Sequence record: NC_034623.1
Reading direction: 5' to 3' (one strand)
Length of the DNA stretch: 36,493 bases
Position 1 is the first letter of the stretch; every line of letters starts with the position of its first letter. Under the pieces are notes generated by a model. That model worked only from the letters and a program-made list of their open reading frames with translations, searched no databases and was not told the origin of the DNA. Positions 9,304 through 27,818 of this stretch are shown here, one piece after another. A program made the translations under genes and the position numbers.

Positions 9304-9401
9304 TTCAATTTTATTATATGCAAATTACTTAGTAATAAAGTTTATGCAAAAAATCGAAATATATAAATATGTCATAATGTTCATTTATAAAATGAGGAAA
9401 A

Positions 9402-9706: not shown

Positions 9707-9761
9707 AAATAAATTAATATATCTTTTTTTATTTTTCATTTTCTGACAAATATATTTTCAT

Positions 9762-10968: not shown

Positions 10969-10990
10969 ATATACATAATATAATGTATAT
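10969..10990. promoter_or_regulatory. Palindromic element upstream of MCP, distal copy
   Basis: atatacataatataatgtatat; 60 bp upstream of the proximal copy. Confidence 0.7.
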
Positions 10991-11028
10991 AGCTTTGGTT
11001 TTGAATTTTACGCCAATTTCATCAACTT

Positions 11029-11048
11029 ATATACATTATATAGTATAT
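11029..11048 (+). promoter_or_regulatory. Palindromic element upstream of MCP, proximal copy
   Basis: atatacattatatagtatat; starts 32 bp before TTTATAT (11061). Confidence 0.7.
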
Positions 11049-11098
11049 ACGGCGTGAAAATTTATATTGTAGCAATTTTAAATATTAATTGACCAAAA

Positions 11099-11503
11099 AT
11101 GGCAAAAGGAAGAACACCAAGATCCTATAGTCAAAGGTATGCAAAATGGTCAGCTAAATTTGCATCATTTTCAAATCCTACCGTAGCATCTACTATATTA
11201 TCAAATGTTGCACCAGTTGCACAACAAAATTTCCAAACAAATGTTCCAAAATTTACTAGCGTAAATGAACAAGTTTCTAGCGTATTGTCAGAATATGGAA
11301 TTACTGGTCCTAACAGAGCCATTTACCAAGGCTTTGGTTTGAAGGTAGCTAGAGCGCTTAATAGGTTGGGAGGAGGGCCAGCACTTGTTAACATGATAAA
11401 TGGTTTGAAAGCATATTATATTTCAGCATTTAATGCTAATCCTACAGTATTAGATGCAGTTACTAATATAATTACTGGATCTCCAACTGGATATGTAAGC
11501 TAA
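11099..11503 (+). CDS. mcp: Rudiviral major capsid protein (134 aa)
   Basis: MAKGRTPRSYSQRYAKW...GITGPNRAIYQGFGLKVARALNRLGGGPAL...AFNANP, the hallmark SIRV coat protein. Confidence 0.98.
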   Translation: MAKGRTPRSYSQRYAKWSAKFASFSNPTVASTILSNVAPVAQQNFQTNVPKFTSVNEQVSSVLSEYGITGPNRAIYQGFGLKVARALNRLGGGPALVNMINGLKAYYISAFNANPTVLDAVTNIITGSPTGYVS

Positions 11504-11560
11504 AAAATTATAGAATATCTTTTAAGCTATTTTATTTTTTTATTTTTTCTTTTTCAGAAC
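11504..11560 (+). terminator. T-rich terminator after MCP
   Basis: Long oligo-T tract at ~11530-11556. Confidence 0.55.
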
Positions 11561-11614
11561 TTTAGTTCAAATTTAAAATTTTAAAAAAATCACTTTTAAC
11601 TTTTTAACTTGAAA

Positions 11615-11785
11615 TTAATCATTATCATCAATTTTTGTTTCTATATACTCATAATTTGTTTTACTTATTCTTTTACAATCACTAATTTTTACATTAGGAT
11701 GATGTTTTTTCAAATGTGTAATCATAGCTTTTCTAGTTCTCGTTAAATGTTGACAAATTGGACACTCGAACAAAAAGACGCCCAT
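11615..11785 (-). CDS. C2H2 zinc-finger protein (~56 aa)
   Basis: FECPICQHLTRTRKAMITHLKKHH; ATG 11785 preferred because tttatttgtc lies upstream at ~11803-11813. Confidence 0.85.
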   Translation of the reverse strand: MGVFLFECPICQHLTRTRKAMITHLKKHHPNVKISDCKRISKTNYEYIETKIDDND

Positions 11786-11821
11786 GATATTTTTTAATGT
11801 CATGACAAATAAAAAATTCAC

Positions 11822-12829
11822 ATGAAAACTACAATTTTGACCATGAACTATTCCTCAATTCGTAATGTTTCAGAGGATATTGCACAAGTTTTACGAAAAA
11901 ATGGAGAAATTGTAACAATTTCAACAAATCCATATTTAATTCCACAATCTGATAAATTAATAATTTTTATGCCTTTCCATCCACCATCTCTAAATCCATA
12001 TTTGTATGCATTTAGAGAATTTAAAGGTAAGAAGTATTTTTATACAACTTGTGATGGTTTACCTAATACAAATATTGTAAATCAATATCTATTAGAAAAT
12101 ATAATATTTATTCCAAATTCAAAGTTTACAGCTCAAAATCTTCAAGAAGTTGGTCTTCAAACTGATCTTCCAGTTTTCCACGGTATAAATTTTGAAATTG
12201 TAGAAAAAGCTGAAAAATTAGCTATTCAATTAAAGCAAAAGCTGGATAAAGATTTTCCAAATTCCATAAAATTTGGAATTGTAAGTGGTTTAACTAAAAG
12301 AAAAAATATGGATCTTATGATAAGAGTTTTCCAAGAAATAAATACTAAAATTCCAGAATTAGCCAAGAAAATCCATTTCTTTGTAATTTCTCATAAAGCA
12401 TTTAAAGATTTTGAAGTTCCTGAAAATGTACATTTTGTTAGCGAATTTGGACTAAATCCAAGAGAATATATTTATGCATTCTATCGCTCCATGGATTATA
12501 TGATAGTTCCTTCTGGAACTGAGGGCTTTGGACTTCCAGTTTTAGAAAGCATGGCCATGGGAACGCCGGTCATTCATCAACTTATGGCACCGTTTGATGA
12601 ATTTACCTCATGGCAGTGGAACCTTTTGATTAAATCTTCAGAAGTTGAAGAATATTATGATAAAACGCATGGGCAAAAATGGAAAATTCATAAATTTGAT
12701 ATTCATGACATGATAAATGCAATATTAATAGCTTCAGAACTTCAAGATAGAGATGAGAGAAATAAAAATTTAAGAGAGTTAGCAAGAAAATATAATATAG
12801 AAAATTTATATGTCAGATTTTTAGAGTGA
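11822..12829 (+). CDS. GT-B (GT4) glycosyltransferase (ORF335-like)
   Basis: RKNMD, VPSGTEGFGLPVLESMAMGTPVI. Confidence 0.95.
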   Translation: MKTTILTMNYSSIRNVSEDIAQVLRKNGEIVTISTNPYLIPQSDKLIIFMPFHPPSLNPYLYAFREFKGKKYFYTTCDGLPNTNIVNQYLLENIIFIPNSKFTAQNLQEVGLQTDLPVFHGINFEIVEKAEKLAIQLKQKLDKDFPNSIKFGIVSGLTKRKNMDLMIRVFQEINTKIPELAKKIHFFVISHKAFKDFEVPENVHFVSEFGLNPREYIYAFYRSMDYMIVPSGTEGFGLPVLESMAMGTPVIHQLMAPFDEFTSWQWNLLIKSSEVEEYYDKTHGQKWKIHKFDIHDMINAILIASELQDRDERNKNLRELARKYNIENLYVRFLE

Positions 12830-12892
12830 CTTCAAGAGCTGATTAATCGAAAAATTTATATGCTTTATATGATATATAATTATAGTGAGAGT

Positions 12893-13018
12893 ATGGAGGA
12901 AGTAATAATTGAATGTAAAGGTCTTACAAAGTTTCATGTAAAGAAAAAGAAAGGTATACAAATTAAAAATATAATAAATATGTGCAAAGATTATGGCTTG
13001 GAAGTGAAGGTGTATTAA
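12893..13018 (+). CDS. 41-aa small basic protein
   Basis: Translated by hand: MEEVIIECKGLTKFHVKKKKGIQIKNIINMCKDYGLEVKVY; upstream TATA (aaaatttatatg) and 3-bp gap to the next ORF. Confidence 0.55.
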   Translation: MEEVIIECKGLTKFHVKKKKGIQIKNIINMCKDYGLEVKVY

Positions 13019-13021
13019 AAA

Positions 13022-13321
13022 ATGCCAAAATTCTATTATTGCTTTTTATGTAAAACTACACTTGTTGGGAAAAAAGAATTCAAAAAACATGCACAGATAC
13101 ACTTTAAAAATAATAGATGTCCATATTGCAATATGAAAACTAAAAATTTATCAATACATTTAGCATATTATCATTTACAATTTAGAAGAAAAGCAGTCTT
13201 ATTAAGGGATTTAGCAATATTGTGCAAGGAAGCAAATACTACAAATATTCTTCATGATAAAGATTTAAAAATTGATAATTACATCAAATTCAATATACAA
13301 AGAATGATGAAAAAGTTATAA
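13022..13321 (+). CDS. Double C2H2 zinc-finger protein (99 aa)
   Basis: CFLC..HAQIH and CPYC..HLAYYH. Confidence 0.85.
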   Translation: MPKFYYCFLCKTTLVGKKEFKKHAQIHFKNNRCPYCNMKTKNLSIHLAYYHLQFRRKAVLLRDLAILCKEANTTNILHDKDLKIDNYIKFNIQRMMKKL

Positions 13322-13397
13322 TTCTTTTTTTTAATACTATTTCTTTTGTCGAATGCTTTATATCTGTCATATTACATGTTTTTATTTACGTGAAAAA

Positions 13398-13598
13398 ATG
13401 GTAAACAAAATAGACATAATAAAAATTCACATATTATCTAAATTAGAATATGAATTAATAAATGAAATAGTACAGAATAAAGAATTTGATGATAAAGACA
13501 TAGTTGATATTTTAATGTTAATAAAAAATATTTTAAATGAAATTGATACGACTTTAACAATTTTAATAAGAACAACACAAAAAAATAACAATTTATAA
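13398..13598 (+). CDS. Hypothetical helical protein (~66 aa)
   Basis: ATG 13398 after a gtga SD-like motif; leucine-rich. Confidence 0.6.
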   Translation: MVNKIDIIKIHILSKLEYELINEIVQNKEFDDKDIVDILMLIKNILNEIDTTLTILIRTTQKNNNL

Positions 13599-13614
13599 AC
13601 TTAGAGGTGTTAAA

Positions 13615-13938
13615 ATGGAGATTATAAAAGATTATGCTTTAGATAATTTAGATATAATGATAATTTTATCTATAGGGAAAAAAGGAAATTCAAGTAAAAA
13701 AATTCATGAAACAGTTATAGAACTTTCGAAATTATTAAATATAAAAATTGATTGTATTGATAATTATTGTGAAGATGTTGCAGAAAGGATAAATTCTCCA
13801 TCAAGAATTCCATTTTGGATTAAGGTCAATTATAGATATAGATTGAACAAATTAGGAAGAATAGCATATGATATAATAATAGAAAAACTAAAAGAGAAAA
13901 AAAGAGAAGATATGTTAAAAATATTAGAAAAACTTTAG
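13615..13938 (+). CDS. 107-aa protein, possible winged helix
   Basis: gaggtg SD; LDNLDIMIILSI...YRYRLNKLGRIAY resembles a wHTH wing. Confidence 0.7.
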   Translation: MEIIKDYALDNLDIMIILSIGKKGNSSKKIHETVIELSKLLNIKIDCIDNYCEDVAERINSPSRIPFWIKVNYRYRLNKLGRIAYDIIIEKLKEKKREDMLKILEKL

Positions 13939-14156
13939 CTCAATTTCTTTTTTATTTCTTCAATTTGTTGTTTTAATTCATTCTGATTTATTTTCAACTC
14001 TTCAATTTCTATTTTTAAATTTTGTAGTTCTGAATTAACTATTTCTTTAACTGCGTCTCTTAATGCATTCTTAATTTTTAAATAAAGTTGAACAATTGCA
14101 AATAATGTAGTTACAAATGTTGAAATTATAGTTAAAACAAGTGTATACTCACTCAT
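13935..14156 (-). CDS. 73-aa N-terminal TM plus coiled-coil protein
   Basis: Hydrophobic N-terminus and heptad C-terminus; overlaps the upstream ORF. Confidence 0.75.
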   Translation of the reverse strand: MSEYTLVLTIISTFVTTLFAIVQLYLKIKNALRDAVKEIVNSELQNLKIEIEELKINQNELKQQIEEIKKKLS

Positions 14157-14517
14157 CTTTGATCCCTTGTATTTCTTCTTCTAGATTATCTAAATTTGTA
14201 TTTTCATCATTTTTGAATTTCTGGTAAACAGAATCAACTTGTTTCGCGTAAGGTTGTGGATAAACTACGCGAAAATCTGCGATATCAATTCTACCAGTTT
14301 TAGGATCTTTTGCAATTAAAAACTGGAAATAAAAAGTAAATCCGGGGATATATAAATCTACAATCATGGGCAATTCTGAATTTTTCAAAACAATAATTGA
14401 ATGTGGTAAATATTTTGATAATCCATAAATTTGACCTTGAAGTTCTAGTTCTCTAATTTTGTCTATCGCGATTCTCACGGGACCGAAAATATTCGAAAAC
14501 TCATCTTTAATTTGCAT
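14149..14517 (-). CDS. Conserved 122-aa rudiviral protein (possibly late/assembly)
   Basis: Good ORF preceded by the late-type palindrome. Confidence 0.8.
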   Translation of the reverse strand: MQIKDEFSNIFGPVRIAIDKIRELELQGQIYGLSKYLPHSIIVLKNSELPMIVDLYIPGFTFYFQFLIAKDPKTGRIDIADFRVVYPQPYAKQVDSVYQKFKNDENTNLDNLEEEIQGIKDE

Positions 14518-14567
14518 GTTTATTTATTTCATAAAACAAGAATAAATAAACTCAAAGCAAATTTGCT

Positions 14568-14589
14568 ATATACATAATATTATGAATAT
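14568..14589. promoter_or_regulatory. Palindromic late-type element
   Basis: atatacataatattatgaatat, one mismatch from a perfect palindrome, upstream of the 14517 minus-strand ORF. Confidence 0.75.
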
Positions 14590-14666
14590 ACATTTGTTGA
14601 TGAGTACGTAAAGCATGAGCGAAAACTTTTTATATTTCGAAAACCAATATTATCTTGGTGAAAGGA

Positions 14667-15020
14667 ATGAGAAGTCAAAAAACACAAAACAAAAGTCAAA
14701 ACAAGTTACTTTTTTGTAAATTATGTCCTTTTGTAGCCGAATCTTATGAAGAATTAGATCATCACATAAAAATGAGTCATTCTTATGATGATGATATTGA
14801 GGAAGAATTTACGCCAATTTTTGTAGATAAAAAAACCTATGAAAAAATGTTATATAATGATTATTTAAGAATTTGTAAAGGAGGAGGATGTATTATTAGA
14901 CCACAAATTGATTTTGAAGATGACAAAAATGAAGTAAGAAGATTGTACAAAGAATATTGTGAAACTTGTGAATTAAAGAAATTATTACTTTCTGAATTAA
15001 AGCAAAATGGAAAAATGTAA
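14667..15020 (+). CDS. C2H2 zinc-finger protein with additional Cys motifs
   Basis: CKLCPF..LDHHIKMSH plus CKGGGC and CETC. Confidence 0.8.
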   Translation: MRSQKTQNKSQNKLLFCKLCPFVAESYEELDHHIKMSHSYDDDIEEEFTPIFVDKKTYEKMLYNDYLRICKGGGCIIRPQIDFEDDKNEVRRLYKEYCETCELKKLLLSELKQNGKM

Positions 15021-15146
15021 ATTTATTAATTTTTTATTTTTTTATCTCTAATTTTTTTCATCTTTGTATTAATATTTCAGCTTTTTGAAATAAATAAAGC
15101 AAAAGATTTTTAAATTTCGATTCTCAATATTATATTGGGGAAAAAT

Positions 15147-15362
15147 ATGAGTCTAAATGAAGTCAAACAAAAAGTAATTCAAATTGCCCATGAATTTGTT
15201 CAAAAATATGGTGAAGAAGCTCTACAACTAAGTTATGATGAATTAATCTCATATCTAACATCATTTTTTAATTATGAAGAATGGTTGATTTTTAAACATA
15301 ATGAAATAGAAATGTTAAGATTATTTTTAAAAACTGTAAAAGAAGATTTATCTAAATCTTAA
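15147..15362 (+). CDS. Hypothetical ~71-aa helical protein
   Basis: ORF with upstream aaaagatttttaaat BRE/TATA. Confidence 0.75.
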   Translation: MSLNEVKQKVIQIAHEFVQKYGEEALQLSYDELISYLTSFFNYEEWLIFKHNEIEMLRLFLKTVKEDLSKS

Positions 15363-15517
15363 GTTAATATTTCCAAAATTTTTTTCTTATCAATCTTTTT
15401 ATCAGTTTTGCAAGGTATATAAAATCCTTCATGTAAATCATACGGTTCACCATACCATAATTTTTTATTCAAATTACATGGCTCAATATTCCAATCTTTT
15501 TTCTTTTTAATTATCAT
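15359..15517 (-). CDS. 52-aa hypothetical protein
   Basis: Translated by hand: MIIKKKKDWNIEPCNLNKKLWYGEPYDLHEGFYIPCKTDKKIDKKKILEILT; 13 bp downstream of the 474-aa gene. Confidence 0.55.
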   Translation of the reverse strand: MIIKKKKDWNIEPCNLNKKLWYGEPYDLHEGFYIPCKTDKKIDKKKILEILT

Positions 15518-15530
15518 GTTTATCAATTCT

Positions 15531-16931
15531 TTATCTTTCAGCTATGTTTTTAAAGTTTTTGTAATAGAAGATTGGCTTATATTGTTTGGCTTTTGCAGAC
15601 TTTTGAGCTAACTTAAGCGAATTTTCAACTTTTGCTTGACCTTGTAATTTCTCTCCAAGTTGTTGAGCAAATTGCAAATCAACATTTGAAATTCCATAAA
15701 ATGACCACTTATTCTTCCAATAATTCAAAAATTCATTATAAGGAAGTGTTCTTTTTCCAGTTGAATAACTATAATTTTGTTGATAAGGATATCTAGCAAT
15801 TTCCAAAATTGCTGAAGCTACCATTTTAGCATACCATATATTAGAATATTTCTTGTTTACAATTCTTTGGACTTGTAAAAATTGTTCATATGAAACTGCA
15901 TAATTCTCAATTTCAGAACTGTAAGTTATGTTTATTCCTCCAGGTGACGGATCGTATAAATGTAGCTTAAATAGTGATCCAAATATTGAAATTACAGTTT
16001 TATCCGCAGTGAGAATAGCTATTAAGTTTTCTAATGTGACATTTTGTGGATTAAATTCCGGAATTAGCATAGCAAAGTCAAGAGGAGTATAATCTAATAT
16101 CATTCCGAAAACGTTAGCAAAATTTTGTAAAATCATACCGTTTTGTAACTGGACTTTATACTCTGGACTTTCTTCAATTTCTGGAGCTAAAACACATCTG
16201 TCTAACCATCCAACATCTAACGCAAAACCACTATTAATTATATCATTCAAATTTGGTATAAATGAAACTACAAATTTAGCTAAATCTGGAAGTTGATTAA
16301 AATTGAGATTTAAAGCATTTAACAAATCATCAACTCCAGTATCTTGAATATTAGAAAGTGAATAATTATCAACAATTGGAATTTGAGTATTTCCAATTCC
16401 TAAAGTTTGTAAGTTAATACTAATATTTGAATAACTTAAACTATTAAAATATTGTTCTATTTTTTCACATGCTTGATTTCTATTTATAATTGTATTTGCT
16501 GACTGAAAAACACTTAAGTCAAAATAAGTCTCATCAAAGACCGCTGGTTGATAAAGTACACTGCAAAGATTTACATAATTATCATAAAATTTTGTAAAGT
16601 TATTGATAAATTGAATTCCTGAAGTTTGTCCAAAAATTCCACTTTGACCTAATTGTAGAAAACTAAATGAATTTGTATTTGGATTAAATATTGAAATTGC
16701 CAAATTGTTTAATGCGGAAAGTAAAGATGAAATAATTGTAGCATATGCAATTCCATAATTAGTATTTATACCTTTAGGAACTGAAATGTTCTCAAGCGGT
16801 GTTGGTAAAACTGATGAAACTCCAGCGTTAAACATTTGCGAAAAAGCGGGAAAAGTATTTCTATTTAGTACTTTTTGATAAAGATGATATTTCATTTGTG
16901 CAATTGATCTTTGTCCTACTTTCCTACCCAT
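15531..16931 (-). CDS. Minor virion structural protein (SIRV2 ORF488/gp33-like)
   Basis: Large ORF with basic MCP-like N-terminus MGRKVGQRSIAQMKY; ATG 16931 fits the TATA at 16951-16961; position matches my recollection of SIRV2. Confidence 0.8.
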   Translation of the reverse strand: MGRKVGQRSIAQMKYHLYQKVLNRNTFPAFSQMFNAGVSSVLPTPLENISVPKGINTNYGIAYATIISSLLSALNNLAISIFNPNTNSFSFLQLGQSGIFGQTSGIQFINNFTKFYDNYVNLCSVLYQPAVFDETYFDLSVFQSANTIINRNQACEKIEQYFNSLSYSNISINLQTLGIGNTQIPIVDNYSLSNIQDTGVDDLLNALNLNFNQLPDLAKFVVSFIPNLNDIINSGFALDVGWLDRCVLAPEIEESPEYKVQLQNGMILQNFANVFGMILDYTPLDFAMLIPEFNPQNVTLENLIAILTADKTVISIFGSLFKLHLYDPSPGGINITYSSEIENYAVSYEQFLQVQRIVNKKYSNIWYAKMVASAILEIARYPYQQNYSYSTGKRTLPYNEFLNYWKNKWSFYGISNVDLQFAQQLGEKLQGQAKVENSLKLAQKSAKAKQYKPIFYYKNFKNIAER

Positions 16932-16973
16932 AATTATTATATTTGTAAAAGTCAAAATAAAAACTTAATTCTA

Positions 16974-16993
16974 ATATACAATATAATGTATAT
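16974..16993 (-). promoter_or_regulatory. Palindromic late-type element
   Basis: atatacaatataatgtatat; on the minus strand it starts 32 bp before TTTATTTT. Confidence 0.7.
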
Positions 16994-17065
16994 CAGTTTT
17001 ACTCTTTGATCTCATCATATTCAATTCATAAAATATATATTTGTCATATTTTGAGTTACAAATAT

Positions 17066-17800: not shown

Positions 17801-17872
17801 ATATCATCAATATAAAAATTTTTATATGACAAATTTAAACATATATATGTCATAATTTTTAAGTTTAATTTG

Positions 17873-18256
17873 ATGAATTTTAGACAATCTGGAAAATATT
17901 ATGAATATAAGACACTTAATTATCTTGAAAAACATGGATACAAAGCTATAAGAATTCCAGTTTCTGGAACTGGAAAACAGCCAATTCCAGATATTATAGC
18001 AACTAAGGATAATACAATTTTTCCAATTGAAGTTAAATCAACTTCACAAAATTATGTTGTAGTTGATAATTTTCAAATTGATAAATTGTTTAAGTTCTGT
18101 GAGATATTCAATTTTTGTAATTGTAAACCGTTAATACTAGTTCATTATAAAAAATATAAAAATGTCATAATATATAATTTGAGTCAAGATGTCAGAACAA
18201 AAGAAAAAATCAAATTTACCTTCAGAGCTAACAGCAAAACTGTATTTAGCACTTGA
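17873..18256 (+). CDS. hjc: Holliday junction resolvase (archaeal Hjc family)
   Basis: GKYYEYKT, RIPVSG, PDIIA, IEVKST. Confidence 0.95.
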   Translation: MNFRQSGKYYEYKTLNYLEKHGYKAIRIPVSGTGKQPIPDIIATKDNTIFPIEVKSTSQNYVVVDNFQIDKLFKFCEIFNFCNCKPLILVHYKKYKNVIIYNLSQDVRTKEKIKFTFRANSKTVFST

Positions 18257-18812: not shown

Positions 18813-21800
18813 ATGAGTTTCTTATTAAATCTTGGAGATTTAGGTACATTTTTTTCAGATGAGCTAACAGCATTAGAGAATTTTGCAAATTTCTTAAGCT
18901 CTGATTTTATAAACTTTTTTAGTGCAGTAGTTAATGATATTGAAAATGTTGTAAGTTTCATAGGTCAGGCAATTAGTGATATTCCAACTTTTATGCAAAA
19001 AATTGCTAACAATTTCTTGACGATTTTGCAAAACTTTGTACAAACTGCAATTCCAGTAGTTTCAGGATTTTTAACATTTCTTGAACAACAAATTATAAAT
19101 GTATTTCAAGATTTGTCTTCTTTAGCTTCTACATTTATTAATGATGCATATTCATTTTTACAAGGTGTTGTAAATGCATTTGCAAATTTAATAAGTACAA
19201 TAGTTCAAGATTTTCTAAATAATTTTGGTCAAAATATGAAACATATTAGTTCTGCAATTTCTCAAGTTACTCAATTTTTAACTCCATTTATCGCTCCAGT
19301 CACTTTAGGAAAATTTTTGCCAGCAATAATAGATAAATTAGCTGAAATTTTGCCAGAAGTTGAAATTGATTTAGCGCCAGTTGGCTTAGGCGGAAAAATT
19401 CCAATTAACTTTGGAGAAATTGTAAAAGCGTTTGCTGAAACTTCAGTTGACTTTTTAAATGAAGTAAGAGTAGAAATACAAACTACGCTTAAGGAGTTTA
19501 TAAAAGAGCCATTTATTTCAGATTTTAAAATTACTGCGAGAGAAATATTTAATGAAATTGGTCTTGGTGATTTGCCATTTGCAGATCCTCCATTTAGATT
19601 AATTGCAAATTGGGTCGGTTCAAGATCATTTTCTGAAATTAAAGACCATCTTAAAGAAACAATTCTATTGACTGGATTTCCAGCATGGTTTACTGATGCT
19701 TATCTAGAATCTCCAGTTGATGATTTTATTCCAAGAAATCCGTTATTTAGACCAGTAAATATAAGAGATGTAATTTTAGCTTCACAATATGGAATTTTAG
19801 ACTTTAGTGCAGTTTCTCAATATGCAGAAAATAATTTAATAACTCCAAAAACTGCAAAATTAATGTATCAAAATGAGACTGCGAGACTTTTACAAAGAGC
19901 AGTTGAAGAGGGAATTAGACAATTTGTAGTTACTCCTGAAAAAGCTTATCAAGAAATAATACAAAATGTTAATTTAGCAGGTAAAGATTTATATCTAAAA
20001 GTTTTCTCTTTGGAGTATAATTATGCAGTTCAAAGAATTGTAAGACAATTCTTAAGATCACTTTTGAGCAGAGCATTAACGAATTTTGGAAGACCTTATA
20101 TAGATTTAAAATTCCTAGAATCAACAGTTCAAAAATTATTTCAAGAACTAAATTATCCTGAAGAAGTTCAAAATGTTTTCAACATAATGATTGAACAATC
20201 TCAAATAGTTTATACTAATCAATTACTTTTGACACAATTAGAACAACTTACCAGATTAGGAATATTTGACGAAAAGAAAGTAAAAGCAGAGTTAAAAGCT
20301 AATAACTTTAATGAACAGATAGCACTTACAATTTTGAATTATGAACTTCAATATGTACAATTACAATATATCTTGAAACAATACCAATTCATGTTACAAA
20401 ATTATATTATTAGTACAAAAGATGCAGAAAATCAATTAAAGAAATTAGGCTTTGATTCATCTATAATTTCTGAGATAATTTTTGAATATCAAACAGCTCC
20501 ATTAACAAAATATCAAATTAGCCAAATTGAAAGTTTGGCTAGAAAAGGATATTTATCAGTTGATGAAATTAAAAAACAATTACATTCATTAGGCATAATT
20601 AAGGAATTTGAAGACATATTTATCAATTACACAAGTCAAGAAATTCAAATATCAACAACTTTAAGTATTGTAAAAGAACAATTAAGAAACTTCCTAATAG
20701 ATTCGAAAACTGTAGAAAATGAATTAAAAGCATTAAAAATTAATGATTATTTAATAAATGAGATAATTCAAGAAGAATATAACATAAATATATCTAAATT
20801 ACAATTATCATATTTAGAAACTTTAGCTAAGAATTTATATTATGATCAAAATCAATTAGCCGGAGAATTAGCAAAAATTCTAAAAGATAAAACTGCAATA
20901 GATCTTTATACTCAAAAATTCTATTATGAATATGTATTTCCAAAAATTGTCAGTTATCACGTTAGTTTAGCAAGACATGGAATTTCCTCAAATATTTCAA
21001 ACTTGCCAAAAGAAATTGTAGATTATGAAATTAATCCAGAAATCCAAATTTTCCAACTTACAACAGAATTAGAATATATAAAATCATTATTAAAAGATTT
21101 ACAAATAACTCCAACAAATGCTGAAAACGAGTTAATAAAATTAGGAATGCAAAAAGATTTAGCTAATTTATTTGTGCAAACTTATATTCCAACACTTTAC
21201 AGTTTACATACAATTATTGGAAATATTATAGAAGGTCAACTTTACAAAGTCGGAAAAATTCCAATTAATTTAGGAAATGCAGAACAACAATTAAGACAAT
21301 TAGAAATTCCAGAGAACCAAATTAAAGTTTTACTAGATCAATATGCCTCCAGTTTTGGCTTAGAAATTTGGAGAAAATACTTACCTTCACTTTCTCAAAT
21401 TGAAACTGCAATAAAATATAACTTTCCAATTAACCAATTAGTTGAATATTCATTTATACCATCTGAATTTCTTAACTTATATTCTAATTTATATCAATAT
21501 GAATTAATTGGACAATATGTACAATCTTTGAGAAATGAATATATTCAACTTCTCACTTATGGAGTTCAAAATATACAATTAGAGAATTTGCTAAAACAAT
21601 ATGGAATAAATCAAGTCCTATTAGAAGTTTTCAAATTATCAGCACAAATTAGAAAATTATTAATGGCTTATCAAGAACTTTACATCACTCCATCTAAAGC
21701 ACTCACAATTAGCGAATATATTAGCAATCCAAATCAACTTTTACAAAAAGTATTTTCCGAATTTCAAGTACCAACAGATTTACAAAATACTTACTTAGAA

Positions 21801-21989
21801 TATGCAAGAAATAGGAGACTTAGAACGTACGTAAATGAAATAATTTCAACAATCAATTTGTTATTTGAAAGACAAAAAATAGATCTAAATACGGCTCAAC
21901 AATACTTACAACAATTAAAACAATATGGTTTAACAAATGAAGAAATTCAATTAATCTTACTTAACTGGCAATTAAGAAGTAACTATTAA
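18813..21989 (+). CDS. Large virion terminal-fibre/end-structure protein (SIRV2 ORF1070/gp38-like)
   Basis: 1058 aa; amphipathic helical N-terminus and repeated I(S/T)xxxAxxxLxxLG units. Confidence 0.9.
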   Translation: MSFLLNLGDLGTFFSDELTALENFANFLSSDFINFFSAVVNDIENVVSFIGQAISDIPTFMQKIANNFLTILQNFVQTAIPVVSGFLTFLEQQIINVFQDLSSLASTFINDAYSFLQGVVNAFANLISTIVQDFLNNFGQNMKHISSAISQVTQFLTPFIAPVTLGKFLPAIIDKLAEILPEVEIDLAPVGLGGKIPINFGEIVKAFAETSVDFLNEVRVEIQTTLKEFIKEPFISDFKITAREIFNEIGLGDLPFADPPFRLIANWVGSRSFSEIKDHLKETILLTGFPAWFTDAYLESPVDDFIPRNPLFRPVNIRDVILASQYGILDFSAVSQYAENNLITPKTAKLMYQNETARLLQRAVEEGIRQFVVTPEKAYQEIIQNVNLAGKDLYLKVFSLEYNYAVQRIVRQFLRSLLSRALTNFGRPYIDLKFLESTVQKLFQELNYPEEVQNVFNIMIEQSQIVYTNQLLLTQLEQLTRLGIFDEKKVKAELKANNFNEQIALTILNYELQYVQLQYILKQYQFMLQNYIISTKDAENQLKKLGFDSSIISEIIFEYQTAPLTKYQISQIESLARKGYLSVDEIKKQLHSLGIIKEFEDIFINYTSQEIQISTTLSIVKEQLRNFLIDSKTVENELKALKINDYLINEIIQEEYNINISKLQLSYLETLAKNLYYDQNQLAGELAKILKDKTAIDLYTQKFYYEYVFPKIVSYHVSLARHGISSNISNLPKEIVDYEINPEIQIFQLTTELEYIKSLLKDLQITPTNAENELIKLGMQKDLANLFVQTYIPTLYSLHTIIGNIIEGQLYKVGKIPINLGNAEQQLRQLEIPENQIKVLLDQYASSFGLEIWRKYLPSLSQIETAIKYNFPINQLVEYSFIPSEFLNLYSNLYQYELIGQYVQSLRNEYIQLLTYGVQNIQLENLLKQYGINQVLLEVFKLSAQIRKLLMAYQELYITPSKALTISEYISNPNQLLQKVFSEFQVPTDLQNTYLEYARNRRLRTYVNEIISTINLLFERQKIDLNTAQQYLQQLKQYGLTNEEIQLILLNWQLRSNY

Positions 21990-22032
21990 ACAACTAAATA
22001 AATAAATTTGTCACATTTTTAAACTAGAAATT

Positions 22033-22848
22033 ATGAGCGTTAATTTATGTCATTATGAGGCGGAAAATATAAGTTATAAAGATTTAGAAAATCTTCAAGG
22101 TATGATATATTATGAGATAAAATATGATGGAACACATATTTGTTTAAAGTATGAAAATGAACTAAAAATTAATACTAGAAAAGATATACCTCATGATAAA
22201 ACATTTCAGAATTTGTTTTATCAAGTTCCAAATATTGATGAAATTATAAAATATATAAAAGAACATAACAATTATATAATACATGGGGAACTTATACATA
22301 AAAAGACATCAGCATTACAGATTCACAAAAATGAAACTCCGGAATTTATCATATATGATGTCTTTGACAAAGAAAATAATAGATATTTAAATCCATTTGA
22401 AGTTGATAGTGAAATTTACGAATGGTATCCAGAAATTTGTTTAGATTTAGATGATTTACTTGATATTATAACTAAAGAAAAACTTGAGGGCTTAGTAGCT
22501 AAAATCTATAATCCGAAATTTGCAAATTGTGAAGAAGGCAGAAATTTTAACATGTGTCTTTTCAAATACAAACCATATTTTTCAACTTTAGGAGTAATAT
22601 TTAAACCAATTAGGAGAGAAATTGATGTTAGACAATTAGCGTTTCTTCTCGGCGAAATAGATAATGATTTAAAGAATAATAAAGATGAATGGTATAGAAA
22701 TCATCCAGAACTTTACAAGTTCTTTATCGAAAATAAAGATAAAATAATACAGATACTACAAAACGAAAACTTCATATTACAAATTGAAGAAAATACACAT
22801 TTAGACATTAAGAAAATTAAAGAATATATTACAAATTTCAAAAGATAA
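22033..22848 (+). CDS. ATP-dependent polynucleotide ligase (nucleotidyltransferase domain, RNA-ligase-like)
   Basis: Motif I EIKYDGTH, Ia TRK, III IHGEL, IIIa FIIYDVFD, IV EGLVAK, V FKYKP, in the correct order; no obvious OB domain. Confidence 0.88.
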   Translation: MSVNLCHYEAENISYKDLENLQGMIYYEIKYDGTHICLKYENELKINTRKDIPHDKTFQNLFYQVPNIDEIIKYIKEHNNYIIHGELIHKKTSALQIHKNETPEFIIYDVFDKENNRYLNPFEVDSEIYEWYPEICLDLDDLLDIITKEKLEGLVAKIYNPKFANCEEGRNFNMCLFKYKPYFSTLGVIFKPIRREIDVRQLAFLLGEIDNDLKNNKDEWYRNHPELYKFFIENKDKIIQILQNENFILQIEENTHLDIKKIKEYITNFKR

Positions 22849-22866
22849 CAACATTTAGACCAAGCC

Positions 22867-22888
22867 ATATACATAATATTATGTATAA
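22867..22888. promoter_or_regulatory. Palindromic late-type element
   Basis: atatacataatattatgtataa (inner 20 bp a perfect palindrome); starts 32 bp before TTTATTTC at 22899. Confidence 0.8.
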
Positions 22889-22929
22889 GCTATGTGTGTT
22901 TATTTCTGTCAAGTTAATAATTTTTTCAT

Positions 22930-24666
22930 ATGAGCTTACCATACAAAGTACGTTTTAAGTTACCGTTAGAATTTCTAACGTTACAAGACTGGAATAATTT
23001 TGTGCAAAATTTGTTATTTATAAATCAATACGGATCAGCTCAACTTTTGCAATATTATCAAAATGGAAACTTCCAAAATCTAAATGATGTAATTGCAAAA
23101 TATCTATATGTTTCAGCTTTGAAAGTTATGGGATATAACGTTTTGCATAATTTATCAACACCACAGGCTTATACATTTGGTGAAGGAAATCGACAGCCAT
23201 TTCAAAGTATGTCAAATAGACCAACTGTAAGTTTTCCATATTCAATACCATTTGAATTTATACAATTTTATCCAATATCCAAATTACCTAGTTATCAATT
23301 TCCTGTATTTCCAGTTGAAAAATTAAAAGTTCAATTATCACAAGTTAGTAAGCAATTACAATTATTAATTCCCAAACTCATAAGTAAAATTGTAACTCCT
23401 CAATTTATTGCAGGAACACAATTTACATTTTCTGGAACAGCGACTGTTGAAGATTTAGTAAATAATTATTTAAATCCACAATATTTACAAACTTGGAGAG
23501 AAATAATAATTCAGAATTTAGGAAGTTCTACAGTTCAAATTAATAATTCTATCTATTTAATGCCTAAAAATTGTTTAAAGATAACTGCAAGCAGTCCATC
23601 AGAAATTCAATTAACTGCACAAACTCCAACACTTTTAAGTGAAGAAATTGAATTTACTGAAGTTCCAATTGTTACTTATACAATTACAATAACAAATTCA
23701 CAGAGTGACCCAACACCTTCACCTTTTCAACAATTGTTAAATTTGAATTTATCATCTATATTATCAAGCTCAAGTCAATTATTAAATTTAGAATTTTGCT
23801 TAGACGTGAATTGTAATACTCCACTTTACGCATGGATTGAAAGTCATACTTCTGATTTATCAAGTGTTTATATTTGGATTAATTTGCCAACTTCAATTCC
23901 CGCAAATTCATCAATTACAATTTATATGTTTATAAGAAATTCAATTCAGTATCCTTACACTGGAATGGCTCCAACTTTAACATCTACATATGCACAATAT
24001 GATAATGGCGAAAATGTATTTATAGATTATTGGAATTTTGCCGGCACATCGGTGCCAAATGGAATAAATGTATATCAAAATCTTGGATCTGTAACATTCA
24101 ATAATGGTGTAACAATAAAAGGTGATTCTTCAACGACTGGCGGTGAAAACGGTATTGCAACTGTAAATTTATATTCTCCGCCAATAGTAATTGATTATTA
24201 TGGAACACAATCAACTAGCCCTTCAGGAGATTCATGGGGTTGGAATATGGCAGGATTTACTAATTATTTATCTAGTAGTGATGCACATCCGGCCGGTGGA
24301 GGAACATATACACTTTTAGATTTTGAATATGGATATAATGCAAAACCAGAGACAAGTCAAGGCGGAAGTGTAAATTACGGAACACTTTCCACACCTTCTA
24401 ACAATTTATTTCCAACATCAGTTTGGACACATATCTATACTTCTTCAGCATATTATACTTACCAAAATTACCAAACTAGCACTGGATATATTACTGGTGC
24501 ATCAAATACCGCATCGTTACCTTTTGAAATAATGGTTGGAAATAATGAGGCAAGTTATGCCCCTAGTGGAATGACAGTTTACTGGTTAAGAGTAAGGGCT
24601 TATCCTCCAAATGGAGTAATGCCTTCAAATTCTCAACCACAAAAGACAATAGTTCTAGTTGGATGA
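22930..24666 (+). CDS. Virion structural/adhesin protein (SIRV2 ORF564/gp39-like) with a DUF2341-like C-terminal region
   Basis: TYTITITNSQSDPTPSPFQQLLNL..PLYAWIES..VWINLPTSIPANSSITIYM; S/T/G/N-rich beta content. Confidence 0.85.
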   Translation: MSLPYKVRFKLPLEFLTLQDWNNFVQNLLFINQYGSAQLLQYYQNGNFQNLNDVIAKYLYVSALKVMGYNVLHNLSTPQAYTFGEGNRQPFQSMSNRPTVSFPYSIPFEFIQFYPISKLPSYQFPVFPVEKLKVQLSQVSKQLQLLIPKLISKIVTPQFIAGTQFTFSGTATVEDLVNNYLNPQYLQTWREIIIQNLGSSTVQINNSIYLMPKNCLKITASSPSEIQLTAQTPTLLSEEIEFTEVPIVTYTITITNSQSDPTPSPFQQLLNLNLSSILSSSSQLLNLEFCLDVNCNTPLYAWIESHTSDLSSVYIWINLPTSIPANSSITIYMFIRNSIQYPYTGMAPTLTSTYAQYDNGENVFIDYWNFAGTSVPNGINVYQNLGSVTFNNGVTIKGDSSTTGGENGIATVNLYSPPIVIDYYGTQSTSPSGDSWGWNMAGFTNYLSSSDAHPAGGGTYTLLDFEYGYNAKPETSQGGSVNYGTLSTPSNNLFPTSVWTHIYTSSAYYTYQNYQTSTGYITGASNTASLPFEIMVGNNEASYAPSGMTVYWLRVRAYPPNGVMPSNSQPQKTIVLVG

Positions 24667-24673
24667 GGCTAAA

Positions 24674-26209
24674 ATGTCTTCAACTTACTGTGTTCAATTA
24701 ACATCAGAAATTTTAGTATTATCTATAACTACAGTAAATCCTGTAAATTTTACATCTTTACAATTTTCATTATCTGTAAATTCTTTAGTTATCTTTCTAT
24801 TTTCAAAATATCCACTTAATTCTGGAGCTTCAAATAATTTTTGTGTGAATCAAGATGAATTTGGTTTTGCTCAAGTTGGGACAACCTTTAATATAGATTT
24901 ATCAAATTATCAAGGATATTATATGTTAATTTTAATTTATCCACAAGGATTTAGTTTCTATAATTATACAAGTTGTTCAATTGTTAGTAATTTGACTATG
25001 ACTTTTCAGAATACTACAATTTCACCGATTACAAATGAAACAGTAAACAATAATTTTGATGGTCAAGGAGAAACTGGATTTTGTACATGTTTTAATATAC
25101 AAAGCCATATTTTAGGAACTACTTGTAACAATTCAAATTATGTTCCAATTATTTCATTAAATGATCTAAATAATCAATTATTAATAATGACATGTCAAGC
25201 ATTTGTATATGAAAATAATACAACTGTAGGATTTGTAACACCAAGTACATGTAGTTATTTTGGAGGATTTATATCAGCAAATATAACATTTATTGCAAAT
25301 CAACAAGTTATAGATTTTCTAAATAATAATAATATTTCTTATAATATTTTATCATCTACTTCATGTCAATCAACTTCTAGTTTATTTCCGTGTACTTCAC
25401 CATGTAAATCATTTTATCAAATTGCAAAATTACTATCTCCACCAACTAAGTATTCTATAATATCTTCAAAATTATGGAATGAAATTGTACAAGATTTATA
25501 TTTAGCTTACAGTGTATTTAAATATATTAATTATTTATCACGATTTATCTATTTAGAATATATATATCCCACAATTTTAGACTTCTATAATTTCTATGAG
25601 AACTTTCAACCATATGCATTTACTCCACTTCTACATGCAAAAAAAGGACTTCCGTTAACTGTAAATGATTTTAATAAATTAATAAATGCTATTATAGAAT
25701 TAGCAAATGAAAATAATATAAAATTGAAAAAAGGACTTTCTTATGTTCAGCATGACCAAGTAGTAAAAGCTTCACAATTTGCAGATATAGTTTATAATGT
25801 TAATCAATTTCTAACGTTTAATTATAACCAGTACTTTCTACTTAGTTGCACTGGAAACGAATTTAATAATTTATTGAGTTCAATAACTACATTTCTAAAT
25901 GTCTTAATTTCAAGTCCTATAAATAACATTACAATTCCAACTAATGTCTATATTAAAAATTTATTAATTTATAATAACGGTCTAACTATTGATATCTTTG
26001 GTTCAATAGACAAATTTTTAGTTGTTCTAAATTCTGGAACAATTATAATTGATAATAATGCTTCTATAAATACGTTAGAAATTGGAAATAATAGTGGAAC
26101 AATTCAAATTAATGATAATGCAATAATTCAAAACTTTATTTGTAATCAAAATATCGGAACTGTAAATATTTCATCAAGTGCTACAATCATAAACAATCAA
26201 TGTGCTTAA
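24674..26209 (+). CDS. Modular putative fibre/adhesin protein with C-terminal beta-solenoid repeats
   Basis: Cys-rich beta N-half, three short (L/I)TxxxWN-like motifs and terminal NSGTIxIxxNAxI repeats; translationally coupled to the upstream gene. Confidence 0.75.
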   Translation: MSSTYCVQLTSEILVLSITTVNPVNFTSLQFSLSVNSLVIFLFSKYPLNSGASNNFCVNQDEFGFAQVGTTFNIDLSNYQGYYMLILIYPQGFSFYNYTSCSIVSNLTMTFQNTTISPITNETVNNNFDGQGETGFCTCFNIQSHILGTTCNNSNYVPIISLNDLNNQLLIMTCQAFVYENNTTVGFVTPSTCSYFGGFISANITFIANQQVIDFLNNNNISYNILSSTSCQSTSSLFPCTSPCKSFYQIAKLLSPPTKYSIISSKLWNEIVQDLYLAYSVFKYINYLSRFIYLEYIYPTILDFYNFYENFQPYAFTPLLHAKKGLPLTVNDFNKLINAIIELANENNIKLKKGLSYVQHDQVVKASQFADIVYNVNQFLTFNYNQYFLLSCTGNEFNNLLSSITTFLNVLISSPINNITIPTNVYIKNLLIYNNGLTIDIFGSIDKFLVVLNSGTIIIDNNASINTLEIGNNSGTIQINDNAIIQNFICNQNIGTVNISSSATIINNQCA

Positions 26210-26278
26210 TATAAAACTTTTACATATTCGGTTTTAATTTTAAATTAAAAAGTTCTAAATTTGACCTCATAATGCTCT

Positions 26279-26761
26279 TCATAATTTACAAAATATAAAT
26301 TCTTTATTATCATCAGTTATAAAAGTTAGAACTGTGCCGTATAATTTTCGCATTAAATCAAAACGGTTCTCTGTCCAATCATGAATAGCTATACAATATT
26401 GTTTGTATTTTTGTAATTGAGAAAAATCAAGTTTACTTTCGCATCCCTCACAATCCATAACTAAAATATCAGCATTTGGATATTCTTTTCCAGTCCATTC
26501 GCCGTAAACTTCAACTTTATCACATATTTGAAATTCTTTACAAACTTTTTCTTTAAATCTTTTATTCAGCTCATCACTTTTTTCATAACCAATTATTTTC
26601 TTTGCACCTTTAAGAAGAAAATACAAAGCAGAACTTCCACAATCATTTCCAATTATTATAATTGTTTTATTTTCAACTTGCAATTTTCCATATGCATAAT
26701 CAAACTCATGCCAATAACAACACTCTAATTTACAAAAATAATCTTTATAATTTATACTCAT
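26279..26761 (-). CDS. SAM-dependent methyltransferase (FkbM-like; SIRV ORF158-like)
   Basis: IIIIGNDCGSSALYF, IIGYEK, LVMDCEGCE. Confidence 0.85.
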   Translation of the reverse strand: MSINYKDYFCKLECCYWHEFDYAYGKLQVENKTIIIIGNDCGSSALYFLLKGAKKIIGYEKSDELNKRFKEKVCKEFQICDKVEVYGEWTGKEYPNADILVMDCEGCESKLDFSQLQKYKQYCIAIHDWTENRFDLMRKLYGTVLTFITDDNKEFIFCKL

Positions 26762-26763
26762 GA

Positions 26764-27687
26764 TTAAATGACCTCAAACAAAGCATAAACTTTAGCTTTC
26801 CCGGTAGCCCATGCGTAAACATTTGCAGGATTATTTACATGTATTTCCAAACTATCATTTTGTAGAATTGGAAAATTATTATATAATTGATTTCCAATAT
26901 AAACTATATAATTGCTAAGATTTTGTAAAATTATTCTTACAGTTTCAATTGGCGGACCTGAGTATAAAGGACTTGGAACTGTAGATACATCCAACTGTAA
27001 ACCTTCTATAGTTGGCGGTGATAAATATAATGAAAGTTTATTAATTGTATTAGCTAAACCGACTGTAGCCAAATAGACATATGTTAATGTATAAGCTATA
27101 GAATCAGCAATAAAATAAATTGCATTTTGTAACGAAAGACCTAATCTTTTAGCTATTGAACTAACTAATTCATAAAATGAAACATAGAAATTCTGTAAAT
27201 CTTGACTAATTATAGCTCTAGTTTGTTGAACATTTGAAATTAAATAATTTACAACATTATAAATTGTCTCATATAAAGCAATTGTATCTTTACTCAAAGT
27301 AGAAGTTACAGTTGGAACTGCAATTATAATTTTTTCATAAATTTCTTCTGGTAACTTAACAATTGAATAATATAATTGTTCATTAGAGTATAAAATTGCA
27401 TTTATTTGTTGATTTGCAGTAGCTATAAATCCAGCGATATATATTGGGTCTAATTCTGTAAGTACTGGCTGTCCAGCTACGTAAACTTCATCATAGAAAA
27501 ATCCAGAACTAGCAGTTATTGAACCTGGAATTGTCAAATTTCCATTTTTTAGAATTGAAGTAACTGCATTTCCTCCAGTTTCATACAATTGAATTAACAA
27601 AAGTGATGCAGTGTTCCACATGGAAGAAGTAAGTCTTTGAAACGGTGAAGCTAACAAACTTGAAATTGATGTATATGTAATGCTCAT
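26764..27687 (-). CDS. 307-aa probable structural protein (SIRV2 ORF309-like)
   Basis: Shares LTxxxWN and IIxQNL..V.I.N motifs with the 578-aa protein; preceded by the late-type palindrome. Confidence 0.75.
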   Translation of the reverse strand: MSITYTSISSLLASPFQRLTSSMWNTASLLLIQLYETGGNAVTSILKNGNLTIPGSITASSGFFYDEVYVAGQPVLTELDPIYIAGFIATANQQINAILYSNEQLYYSIVKLPEEIYEKIIIAVPTVTSTLSKDTIALYETIYNVVNYLISNVQQTRAIISQDLQNFYVSFYELVSSIAKRLGLSLQNAIYFIADSIAYTLTYVYLATVGLANTINKLSLYLSPPTIEGLQLDVSTVPSPLYSGPPIETVRIILQNLSNYIVYIGNQLYNNFPILQNDSLEIHVNNPANVYAWATGKAKVYALFEVI

Positions 27688-27730
27688 ATGTTTATATACT
27701 TAAATTGTAGTAAAAATAAACTCATAACTT

Positions 27731-27750
27731 ATATATCATATTATGTATAT
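27731..27750 (-). promoter_or_regulatory. Palindromic late-type element
   Basis: Minus strand atatacataatatgatatat; starts 30 bp before TTTATTTTT (27720). Confidence 0.7.
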
Positions 27751-27818
27751 CACTTGATCTAATTGTCCTCGTTACGAATTAACAATATTTTAATTTGTCA
27801 TGAACTGGAAAAATAATT

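Follow-up and report, generated by a model that had tools for sequence, protein, structure and literature searches.

How are the virion genes of a rod-shaped archaeal virus marked off from the rest of its genome? The question is raised by a nearly palindromic 22-bp sequence that recurs in Sulfolobus islandicus rod-shaped virus 8 (SIRV8; Rudiviridae, Usarudivirus, Yellowstone), whose complete genome (36,493 bp, 25% G+C, 100% identity to KY744229/NC_034623) is the window analysed here, with genes numbered as the RefSeq open reading frames ORF1-61. A first-pass annotation of the window had described six copies of the sequence as a common operator of structural genes and as part of a candidate late-transcription activation system. 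All six copies are present in the sequence at the places where they had been put, and the claim that they form a shared, position-constrained cis-element before a defined gene set was borne out by a matrix scan, by promoter geometry and by conservation across genera. The control of transcription in archaeal viruses is known in fragments, namely one early consensus, the GTC element and a few repressors; the element described here amounts to a sequence-defined regulon, made up of the gene for the major capsid protein (MCP) and four other transcription units.

Three enriched motifs, the early consensus (E), the TATA box with a GTC element (GTC) and the palindrome (P), were looked for in the 130 nt before each of the 61 genes, and the promoters were found to fall into three mutually exclusive classes, none of them carrying two motifs. 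The early consensus GAGAAAACTTTAAA, which combines a TATA box with a strong TFB-recognition element (BRE), lies 46-51 nt before the start codons of ORF1, 3, 4, 6, 9, 11, 58, 59 and 60, nine genes that occupy both genome ends (window 1100-5100 and 34900-36300), and it marks the anti-defence or early class of rudiviruses, with Aca8 (PMC11065993). A TATA box directly followed by TGTCAT was found 27-49 nt before about 16 genes, mostly of the replication and accessory regions but with the regulator genes ORF17 and ORF20 included (examples at 8630-8645, 9360-9375, 17030-17050 and 27783-27800); this TATA-proximal GTC element goes back to Kessler 2004, as cited in PMC5569661. The palindrome was found at ORF26 (MCP), ORF34, ORF38, ORF44 and ORF47 only, and all five of these promoters lack both TGTCAT and the early consensus. 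No early-class promoter carried the palindrome, in agreement with the first-pass annotation. The divergent partners ORF39 and ORF48 have TATA+GTC promoters of their own 33-40 bp beyond the palindrome, which therefore belongs to the side without GTC. The same picture was obtained for SIRV2, with the palindrome at gp26 (-70), gp32 (-72), gp39 (-63), gp42 (-72) and gp14 (-63), the same distances as in SIRV8, the early motif on genes reported as early, gp3 and gp48 among them (PMC11065993), and the gp34-37 operon in the GTC class; gp17 and gp34-37 have been reported as middle/late (bioRxiv 10.1101/2023.01.10.523387).

The MCP gene (ORF26, orthologue of SIRV2 ORF134; 11099-11503, + strand) is preceded by two copies 60 bp apart, a spacing that had been noted correctly. 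The distal copy, P1 (10969-10990, no strand assigned; ATATACATAATATAATGTATAT), has perfect 8-bp arms around a 6-bp spacer, scores 27-34 bits on both strands and is conserved in SIRV7/4/5/9/11 and in IMG/VR contigs. The proximal copy, P2 (11029-11050, +; ATATACATTATATAGTATATAC), is directed to the MCP gene, and its orthologous sites in SIRV1 (11072-11093) and SIRV2 (13988-14009) keep the same position, -70 from the ATG. Across the spacer ggcgtgaaaa it leads into the MCP core promoter (11051-11068, +), which comprises the BRE-like GGCGTGAAAA and the TATA box TTTATATT (11061-11068), 32 bp after the start of P2; a conserved MCP promoter block, cgtgaAaATTTAta, was found in 17 sequences. P3 (14568-14589, no strand assigned; ATATACATAATATTATGAATAT, or ATATTCATAATATTATGTATAT when oriented to the gene) lies between ORF34 (-) and the C2H2 zinc-finger gene ORF35 (+), with a mean column conservation of 0.95 in 13 orthologous promoters; the spacer agcaaatttgctttgag separates it from the TATA box of ORF34 (TTTATTTA, 14543-14550, -), 39 bp after the motif start, and the unit downstream consists of ORF34 (122 aa, SIRV2 ORF110 orthologue) and ORF33 (ORF84c orthologue; 13935-14517, -). 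P4 (16972-16993, -; ATATACATTATATTGTATATTA), with the spacer gaattaagtt and the TATA box TTTATTTT (16954-16961, -) 32 bp after its start, is directed to ORF38 (466 aa; orthologue of SIRV2 ORF488 and SRV ORF464) and ORF37 (15359-16931, -). Since this TATA box overlaps the TTG at 16955, the mechanically assigned start, the RefSeq ATG at 16931 is the plausible one, and the ORF38 mRNA is probably leaderless. P5 (22867-22888, +; ATATACATAATATTATGTATAA), whose core is a perfect palindrome of 20 bp, is followed by the spacer gctatgtgtg and the TATA box TTTATTTC (22899-22906, +), again at 32 bp, and by ORF44 (578 aa; orthologue of SIRV2 ORF564 and SRV ORF581) and ORF45 (22930-26209, +). P6 (27729-27750, -; ATATACATAATATGATATATAA) has the shortest spacer, gttatgag, with a TATA box identical to that of ORF38 at 27713-27720 (-), 30 bp after the motif start, and is directed to ORF47 (307 aa; SIRV2 ORF269 orthologue) and the S-adenosylmethionine (SAM) methyltransferase gene ORF46 (26279-27687, -). 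The distances of 32, 32, 32, 30 and 39 bp to a TTTAT(T/A)T box, as originally listed, were correct when the coordinates were rechecked. SRV ORF464 and ORF581, the orthologues of ORF38 and ORF44, are annotated as structural proteins in SRV.

The element lies at about -62 to -41 relative to the transcription start; in five of five SIRV8 promoters its end is separated from the TATA box by 8-17 bp, typically 10 bp. In all five P-class genes the TATA box stands 30-38 nt before the ATG, so that leaders would be very short or absent, and the invariant part of the element, an oriented 13-mer, begins 62-72 nt upstream of the start codon. The core is written C-ATATACATWATAT, the C and an A/C-rich flank (CAA..CAAC..C) before it being present as a rule, and it continues into some nine bases rich in A and T, in most cases an inverted ATGTATWW, which are usually closed by a G; of the two arms the second is the weaker. 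The uniform palindrome of the first description had thus to be modified: a near-palindrome exists, but its 8-bp arms stand 4 or 6 bp apart in SIRV8 and the conserved part is the oriented 13-mer. The element is a near-palindrome with an orientation and no simple palindrome. It always stays clear of the TATA box and of the start site of the gene to which it belongs, and, as it lies upstream of the TATA boxes, it is taken to be a DNA-level element. An RNA hairpin or terminator is improbable, since a sequence upstream of the TATA box, mostly in divergent regions, would not be expected in transcripts.

Chance was evaluated in three ways. With at most one mismatch and both strands counted, the 13-mer ATATACATWATAT occurs 14 times in SIRV8 against 1.29 expected from dinucleotide shuffles, and none of 100 shuffles reached 14. 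When only intergenic DNA (6.4 kb) was counted, which gives a background with the AT-rich composition of promoters, ATATACAT ranked third among enriched 8-mers (9 versus 0.92 expected), and the words above it were known ones, belonging to TATA+GTC and to the early consensus. Finally, a cross-validation matrix of 27 columns was built from 16 SIRV1 and SIRV2 sites only and then applied to SIRV8. Its nine best matches, with 15-34 bits (0.00 expected at 15 bits or more, 60 shuffles), are the six sites, all of them intergenic, and the tenth, with 10 bits, is at background level; no equally good matches unrelated to promoters were found genome-wide. A one-mismatch form of the 13-mer, ATATTCATAATAT, is present on the - strand at window 3176-3188, where it overlaps the ATG of ORF7 just downstream of the GTC promoter of that gene.

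The element was found at the MCP promoter and at the promoters of ORF110-, ORF488-, ORF564- and ORF269-type genes in SIRV7, SIRV2 and SIRV1, and it is conserved at orthologous promoters in Usa-, Ice- and Hoswirudiviruses, where the flanks diverge. The Icelandic viruses SIRV1 and SIRV2 have extra copies at the ORF335 glycosyltransferase gene and at ORF399 (two copies, 114 bp apart), and in SSRV1 the MCP promoter bears the element and other sites have the variant ATATTCATAATAT, in many cases with arms 12 bp apart. When 10-17 non-identical upstream regions of orthologous genes were aligned, conservation was highest or nearly highest in the columns of the palindrome, with a mean majority frequency of 0.82-0.95 versus 0.60-0.80 in the 25 nt upstream, which points to purifying selection on these columns. 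Among 2.9 million IMG/VR contigs, the exact 20-bp core was found at 40 loci, 33 of them rudiviral, and in 33 of 33 rudiviral loci the site lies upstream of an MCP, ORF34 or ORF44 orthologue; before ORF44 orthologues it always stands 62 nt from the ATG, even at 57% protein identity. Scans for inverted pairs showed enrichment in SIRV8, SIRV7, SIRV2, SIRV1 and SSRV1 (6-8 sites versus 0.3-1.1 expected), one site at the MCP gene in MRV1, a few sites in SRV and SBRV1, one in ARV1 and none in SMRV1 (47% G+C).

Related sequences were also recorded outside this promoter set. The promoters of SRV ORF1059 and ORF581 share a block of about 40 nt, ATATTATGAATAATRCTTGAACAATTTCTTTACATTGT (about 15420-15480 and 20300-20370), which starts with a degenerate palindrome and looks like a duplicated promoter cassette. 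Perfect 13-mers are found in the inverted terminal repeats of SIRV2 (905-917 and 34534-34546), about 220 nt outside ORF83a/b; the SIRV8 record, labelled a partial genome, has no equivalent of them. The variant ATATTCATAATAT is also part of the 5'-terminal coding sequence of the resolvase gene in each of five genera (SIRV8 17896-17908 on the - strand, SIRV2 19330-19342, SIRV1 15863-15875, SSRV1 9420-9432 and SBRV1 17884-17896), where it is most simply read as a coding look-alike that would derive from a conserved peptide (..YYEY..) and not as a regulatory site. The resolvase gene of SIRV8 is itself unannotated in RefSeq (17870-18256, +; Hjc Holliday-junction-resolvase domain, Pfam E 3e-18). SSRV1 (21908-22720) and MRV1 (19288-20136) have an annotated homologue of transcription factor B (TFB), and the SSRV1 gene has a variant of the palindrome immediately before it, at 22781-22802.

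What, then, does the element do? The preferred reading, to which a probability of about 0.6 is given, is that of a positive upstream element that aids the assembly of TATA-binding protein (TBP) and TFB and defines a virion-module regulon. The palindrome would be an upstream promoter element working on DNA and would constitute a third promoter class in SIRV-type rudiviruses, driving MCP, the ORF488-, ORF564-, ORF269- and ORF110-type genes and their downstream partners. Its reader would most likely be a dimeric or pseudo-dimeric DNA-binding protein that, once bound, helps TBP and TFB to assemble on core promoters with poor BREs, that of MCP excepted; such positive control would set P-class genes apart from the early class, with its strong BRE, and from the GTC class. 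The purine-rich BRE had been described as missing from the P promoters, which is correct for four of them but not for MCP, where a BRE-like GTGAAAA is present.

The published work on SIRV1 bears on this reading at one of the promoters. The SIRV1 promoters 56, 134 (MCP) and 399 were used as baits by Kessler et al. 2006, and one host protein was recovered, Sta1 (PMC1635249). Sta1 (also Sul14a, SSO0048), a dimeric protein of the winged-helix (wHTH) type, was obtained from infected and uninfected extracts alike, protects two regions of about 20 bp on promoter 134, one on the core promoter and one about 30 nt upstream, and stimulates this promoter in vitro when TBP or TFB is limiting; SIRV promoters, 134 among them, were weak with TBP, TFB and RNA polymerase alone (PMC1635249). 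In the SIRV1 MCP promoter, ATATACATTATATTAT was found to be the left 16 bp of the palindrome, and the Reg2 oligonucleotide, representing the core-region footprint, starts exactly 30 nt after the palindrome start. The consensus ATNT-N8-(A/T)NAT was exactly reproduced from ATATACATTATATTAT, ATTTAAAGAATAAAAT (inside Reg2) and ATATACTTATATACAT (promoter 56), and all three bait fragments contain ATATAC-type sites, with two palindromes in 399. From the position of Reg2 and the match to the consensus, the upstream footprint on promoter 134 probably falls on the palindrome, whose left 16 bp would be the protected sequence. The published SIRV1 results would thus mean that the MCP copy is bound by host Sta1/Sul14a and that transcription from it is stimulated in vitro. 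The activator role proposed at first pass is plausible, with a precedent in vitro at the SIRV1 MCP promoter (PMC1635249); for the other promoters it is a prediction.

A number of observations weigh against a positive, late-acting element. The dissociation constant of Sta1 on the core-promoter oligonucleotide is 10 µM, and SIRV transcription was called 'barely chronological' (Kessler 2004 as summarised in PMC1635249, which also gives the constant). Sta1/Sul14a has since been reclassified as an abundant, essential chromatin protein that is non-sequence-specific and AT-preferring (PMC11841832, PMC12847825), and its footprint may reflect AT-richness only. Not every virion or egress gene is covered, for in SIRVs the palindrome is missing both from the gene for the tail fibre (ORF42, ORF1070-type), which in SIRV1 is under the control of SvtR, and from that for the pyramid (VAP). 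Arm gaps of 12 bp at some sites of SIRV1/2, SSRV1 and SBRV1, beside those of 4 and 6 bp, and a motif-to-TATA distance of 23-49 bp at some promoters of relatives are not easily reconciled with a rigid dimer held to one helical phase. Repression, too, is compatible with an upstream position, as SvtR represses from about 80 nt upstream (PMC5569661). No specific reader was found for the palindrome among the proteins considered below, and sequence-specific binding, activation in vivo and late timing are parts of the reading that we infer.

Among the other explanations, an architectural or chromatin site survives best, although it is considered unlikely. The element would be a bendable AT tract of high affinity that attracts Sta1/Sul14a or another AT-preferring protein, with no dedicated regulator and no temporal switch, and it would act like an UP element or an IHF site in boosting strong structural-gene promoters. 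Such a site would agree with the recovery of Sta1 as the sole protein on 134, 399 and 56, from infected and uninfected extracts, and with its activation in vitro (PMC1635249), with the occupancy of promoters by Sul14a in vivo, AT-rich DNA being bound non-specifically (PMC12847825), with the composition of the element (20 of 22 positions A or T) and with the lack of the perfect 20-bp core in any Sulfolobales genome, so that no host regulon is evident. A non-specific, AT-preferring protein nevertheless leaves unexplained the invariant C/G positions and the exact 13-mer, which are kept across genera although any AT tract would do at 25% G+C. The Sta1 consensus ATNT-N8-(A/T)NAT matches four of the six SIRV8 sites but 404 places genome-wide, whereas the palindrome is found only at P-class promoters, and viral proteins of 5-10 kDa could have escaped the 2006 pull-down. 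The single mapped host Sta1 site (sso0777) has a different architecture (PMC2175319). The 2006 result can be re-read accordingly, the Sta1 'site' on the MCP promoter being one copy of a family-wide element, and the question is sharpened to whether a chromatin protein or a specific factor is its reader.

Nucleation of a repressor is regarded as improbable. A viral ribbon-helix-helix (RHH) protein would spread from the palindrome over BRE and TATA, as has been proposed for SvtR and AvtR, and keep the virion genes silent until titrated by replicated genomes; SvtR represses ORF1070 from about 80 nt upstream of TATA, AvtR oligomerises over about 100 nt (PMC5569661), rudiviruses encode at least three RHH proteins, and the known archaeal viral regulators are mostly repressors. 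The behaviour of promoter 134, weak with basal factors and stimulated rather than inhibited by Sta1 (PMC1635249), is the opposite of what a repressor site would suggest, the element does not reach the TATA box or start site of its own gene, and the SvtR and aCcr1 motifs do not match it.

By analogy with phi29 p4, which works between early and late promoters, a single bound factor might activate the P-class gene and reduce expression of the GTC-class gene on the other side. A divergent arrangement is indeed found in four of the five regions with a palindrome (ORF38/39, ORF47/48, ORF34/35 and ORF25/26), and the GTC promoters of ORF39 and ORF48 lie close by, as described above; P5 (ORF44), on the other hand, belongs to a tandem arrangement, the MCP gene has its partner more than 110 bp away, and such a bidirectional switch, which is doubtful in the extreme, would be an elaboration of the positive upstream element and no true alternative to it. 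The absence of any regulatory role, with the copies being duplicated promoter cassettes, chance in AT-rich DNA or sites of replication, packaging or resolution, hardly deserves credence, for although SIRV1/2 copies share the longer block ATATACATTATATTTATTATATGAATTATAG (ORF269, ORF335 and the distal ORF564 site), which suggests duplication, and SIRV2 has copies in its terminal repeats, chance is excluded by the 13-mer, 8-mer and matrix statistics, the element is fixed at orthologous promoters across genera while the flanks diverged, and its relation to TATA box and ATG is constant.

If the palindrome is a positive upstream element, which protein reads it? Several proteins proposed at first pass were discarded. 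For the SvtR homologue ORF20 (9405) and the gp21/aCcr1 homologue ORF21 (9560), the published motifs do not fit the element. The C2H2 zinc-finger protein ORF35 (14667) and ORF32 (13615) have no homologues outside Usarudiviruses and cannot be a common reader. A host regulon built on the perfect site is likewise unsupported: a search for the 20-bp core TATACATWATATWATGTATA in Bacteria and Archaea, with one genome per species, gave 73 loci and none in Sulfolobales, which argues against host use of the same site but would allow degenerate host sites.

The 73 cellular matches are mostly from Clostridia (Oscillospiraceae, Ruminococcus and 'Candidatus Fimenecus'), and their distribution suggests an unrelated bacterial operator or repeat of the same sequence. 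In a metagenome-assembled genome of Aeropyrum sp. (contig WAKF01000027, 56% G+C), a near-identical palindrome, CTATACATAATATAATGTATAA, lies at 3710-3731, in the divergent region between a gene for a membrane protein with wHTH (ArsR-like) and RDD parts and genes for cytochrome bd oxidase; a chance origin is unlikely in GC-rich DNA, and the palindrome may be the operator of the ArsR-like regulator.

One viral protein is of interest as a lead. ORF17 (8326-8598, -), whose own GTC-class promoter has one ATGTATAT half-site placed between TATA box and GTC, has a match to Pfam RHH_3 at the C-terminus just below the cut-off. Its AlphaFold (AF2) model, with a predicted local distance difference test (pLDDT) of 91.8, consists of two beta-alpha-alpha repeats in one chain (E6-13, H15-23, H25-36, E53-60, H61-73 and H78-89). 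The best Foldseek matches, which are weak, were chains of the F-plasmid relaxosome (probability up to 0.95, E 0.13), which we take to be TraY, and no sequence similarity to any PDB chain was detected. With two repeats per chain, as in AvtR and TraY, ORF17 is predicted to be a tandem RHH pseudo-dimer, and such a protein, being asymmetric in itself, would be a suitable reader for an operator that is asymmetric too. Homologues of ORF17 are present in the motif-bearing genera, ARV1 has a weak ORF17-like match and one palindrome, and SMRV1 has no motif; in contigs L111 and L112, residues of the beta-strands are changed and the motif is kept. The well-conserved homologues of SIRV2 (9477-9722) and SIRV1 (6057-6302) both lie in 'empty' gaps of the reference annotation, and the SIRV2 frame begins behind a stop codon with no ATG, GTG or TTG to start from, so that a non-canonical start may be used. 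The case for ORF17 as reader is circumstantial and the assignment speculative. A three-tier programme written in the three exclusive promoter types, with a sequence-specific viral activator, the product of a GTC-class gene, dedicated to switching on the third tier, the ORF17 family being the candidate, and with Sta1/Sul14a as no more than an architectural helper, is put forward very tentatively and is not thought likely; if true, it would provide the first late-gene activator with a defined regulon for an archaeal virus.

Two RefSeq names in the window look wrong. The 'terminase small subunit' (window 3982-4149) is a wHTH gene of the Aca8/ORF56a type, and the 'protease' (window 6491-7798) is an ORF436/440-type gene, whose counterparts are given as helicase/ATPase in the SRV and SSRV1 records.

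The 22-bp element can serve as a probe for finding the factor, and the conserved ORF110- and ORF269-type genes are flagged as members of the virion programme, as was predicted for the 14149 and 26764 reading frames. The SIRV2 system, with in vitro transcription and CRISPR-based genome editing, makes these proposals directly testable.

With regard to known systems, what would be new is the conserved element of a gene set; the MCP copy had been touched on in 2006. The motif had been taken for undescribed, which applies to the gene-set element but not to the MCP copy, already proposed as a Sta1 site. For rudiviral promoters, reviews and later papers describe the GTC element and the early consensus only (PMC5569661, PMC11065993), and a full-text search for ATATACAT with SIRV returned primer lists only, although an earlier account in Kessler 2004, Okutan 2013 or Quax 2013 is possible. 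The palindrome resembles the early consensus and the GTC element in being a virus-specific class motif present at many genes per genome and conserved across rudiviruses, but these overlap or follow the core promoter, unlike the palindrome, and differ from it in sequence and in gene sets. The Sta1 site comes from the same virus family and the same gene (MCP) and is likewise an imperfect inverted repeat of about 20 bp, about 30 nt upstream, with a dimeric binder; Kessler 2006, however, gave ATNT-N8-WNAT only and no ATATACAT...ATGTATAT element common to a promoter set, and Sta1 also binds the core promoter region, which has no palindrome.

The operators of SvtR (SIRV1 gp08) and AvtR (AFV6 gp29) are also imperfect inverted repeats in promoters of filamentous viruses with RHH readers, and AvtR, a tandem-RHH monomer that activates or represses, has the fold predicted for ORF17 (PMC5569661). 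Their consensus sequences, ATnnTTCAAnAnnnnnAAAATG and ATnnTnnTAnnACnTT, differ from the palindrome, and the SvtR consensus has no match anywhere in SIRV8. The aCcr1-box or ccr-2 box (GTA-W-TAC; AGTATTA; TGTATTAT), read by host aCcr1-3 and by SIRV2 gp21 (PMC9976878, PMC9976892, PMC13199686), is similar as a short AT-rich palindrome with GTA and TAC cores whose reader is a small RHH protein and a core rudiviral gene product, and some proximal half-sites in SIRV1/2, ATGTATTAG, are aCcr1-box-like. The palindrome differs in having its TAC and GTA halves in the opposite order, 10 bp apart, and none of the six SIRV8 sites, which lie upstream of the TATA box, has a match to the aCcr1-box within its bounds or in the 3 bp next to it.

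Among bacteriophages, the sites of phi29 p4, Mu C and P2 Ogr are activator sites of late promoters. They too are dyad-symmetric and lie at a fixed distance upstream of weak promoters of late structural genes, but they serve the bacterial sigma-70 machinery, and the likeness is one of analogy only. In archaea, the region upstream of the BRE is where activators such as Ptr2 act. The Ptr2 sites of Methanocaldococcus jannaschii are palindromic, sometimes two in number, and placed upstream of BRE/TATA (as cited in PMC1635249). Ptr2 is a euryarchaeal, cellular regulator of the Lrp family that recognises an unrelated sequence and activates through recruitment of TBP; the likeness to SIRV8 lies in site position and dyad symmetry, the SIRV8 element being, as Ptr2 sites are, dyad-symmetric and upstream of BRE/TATA without overlapping them.

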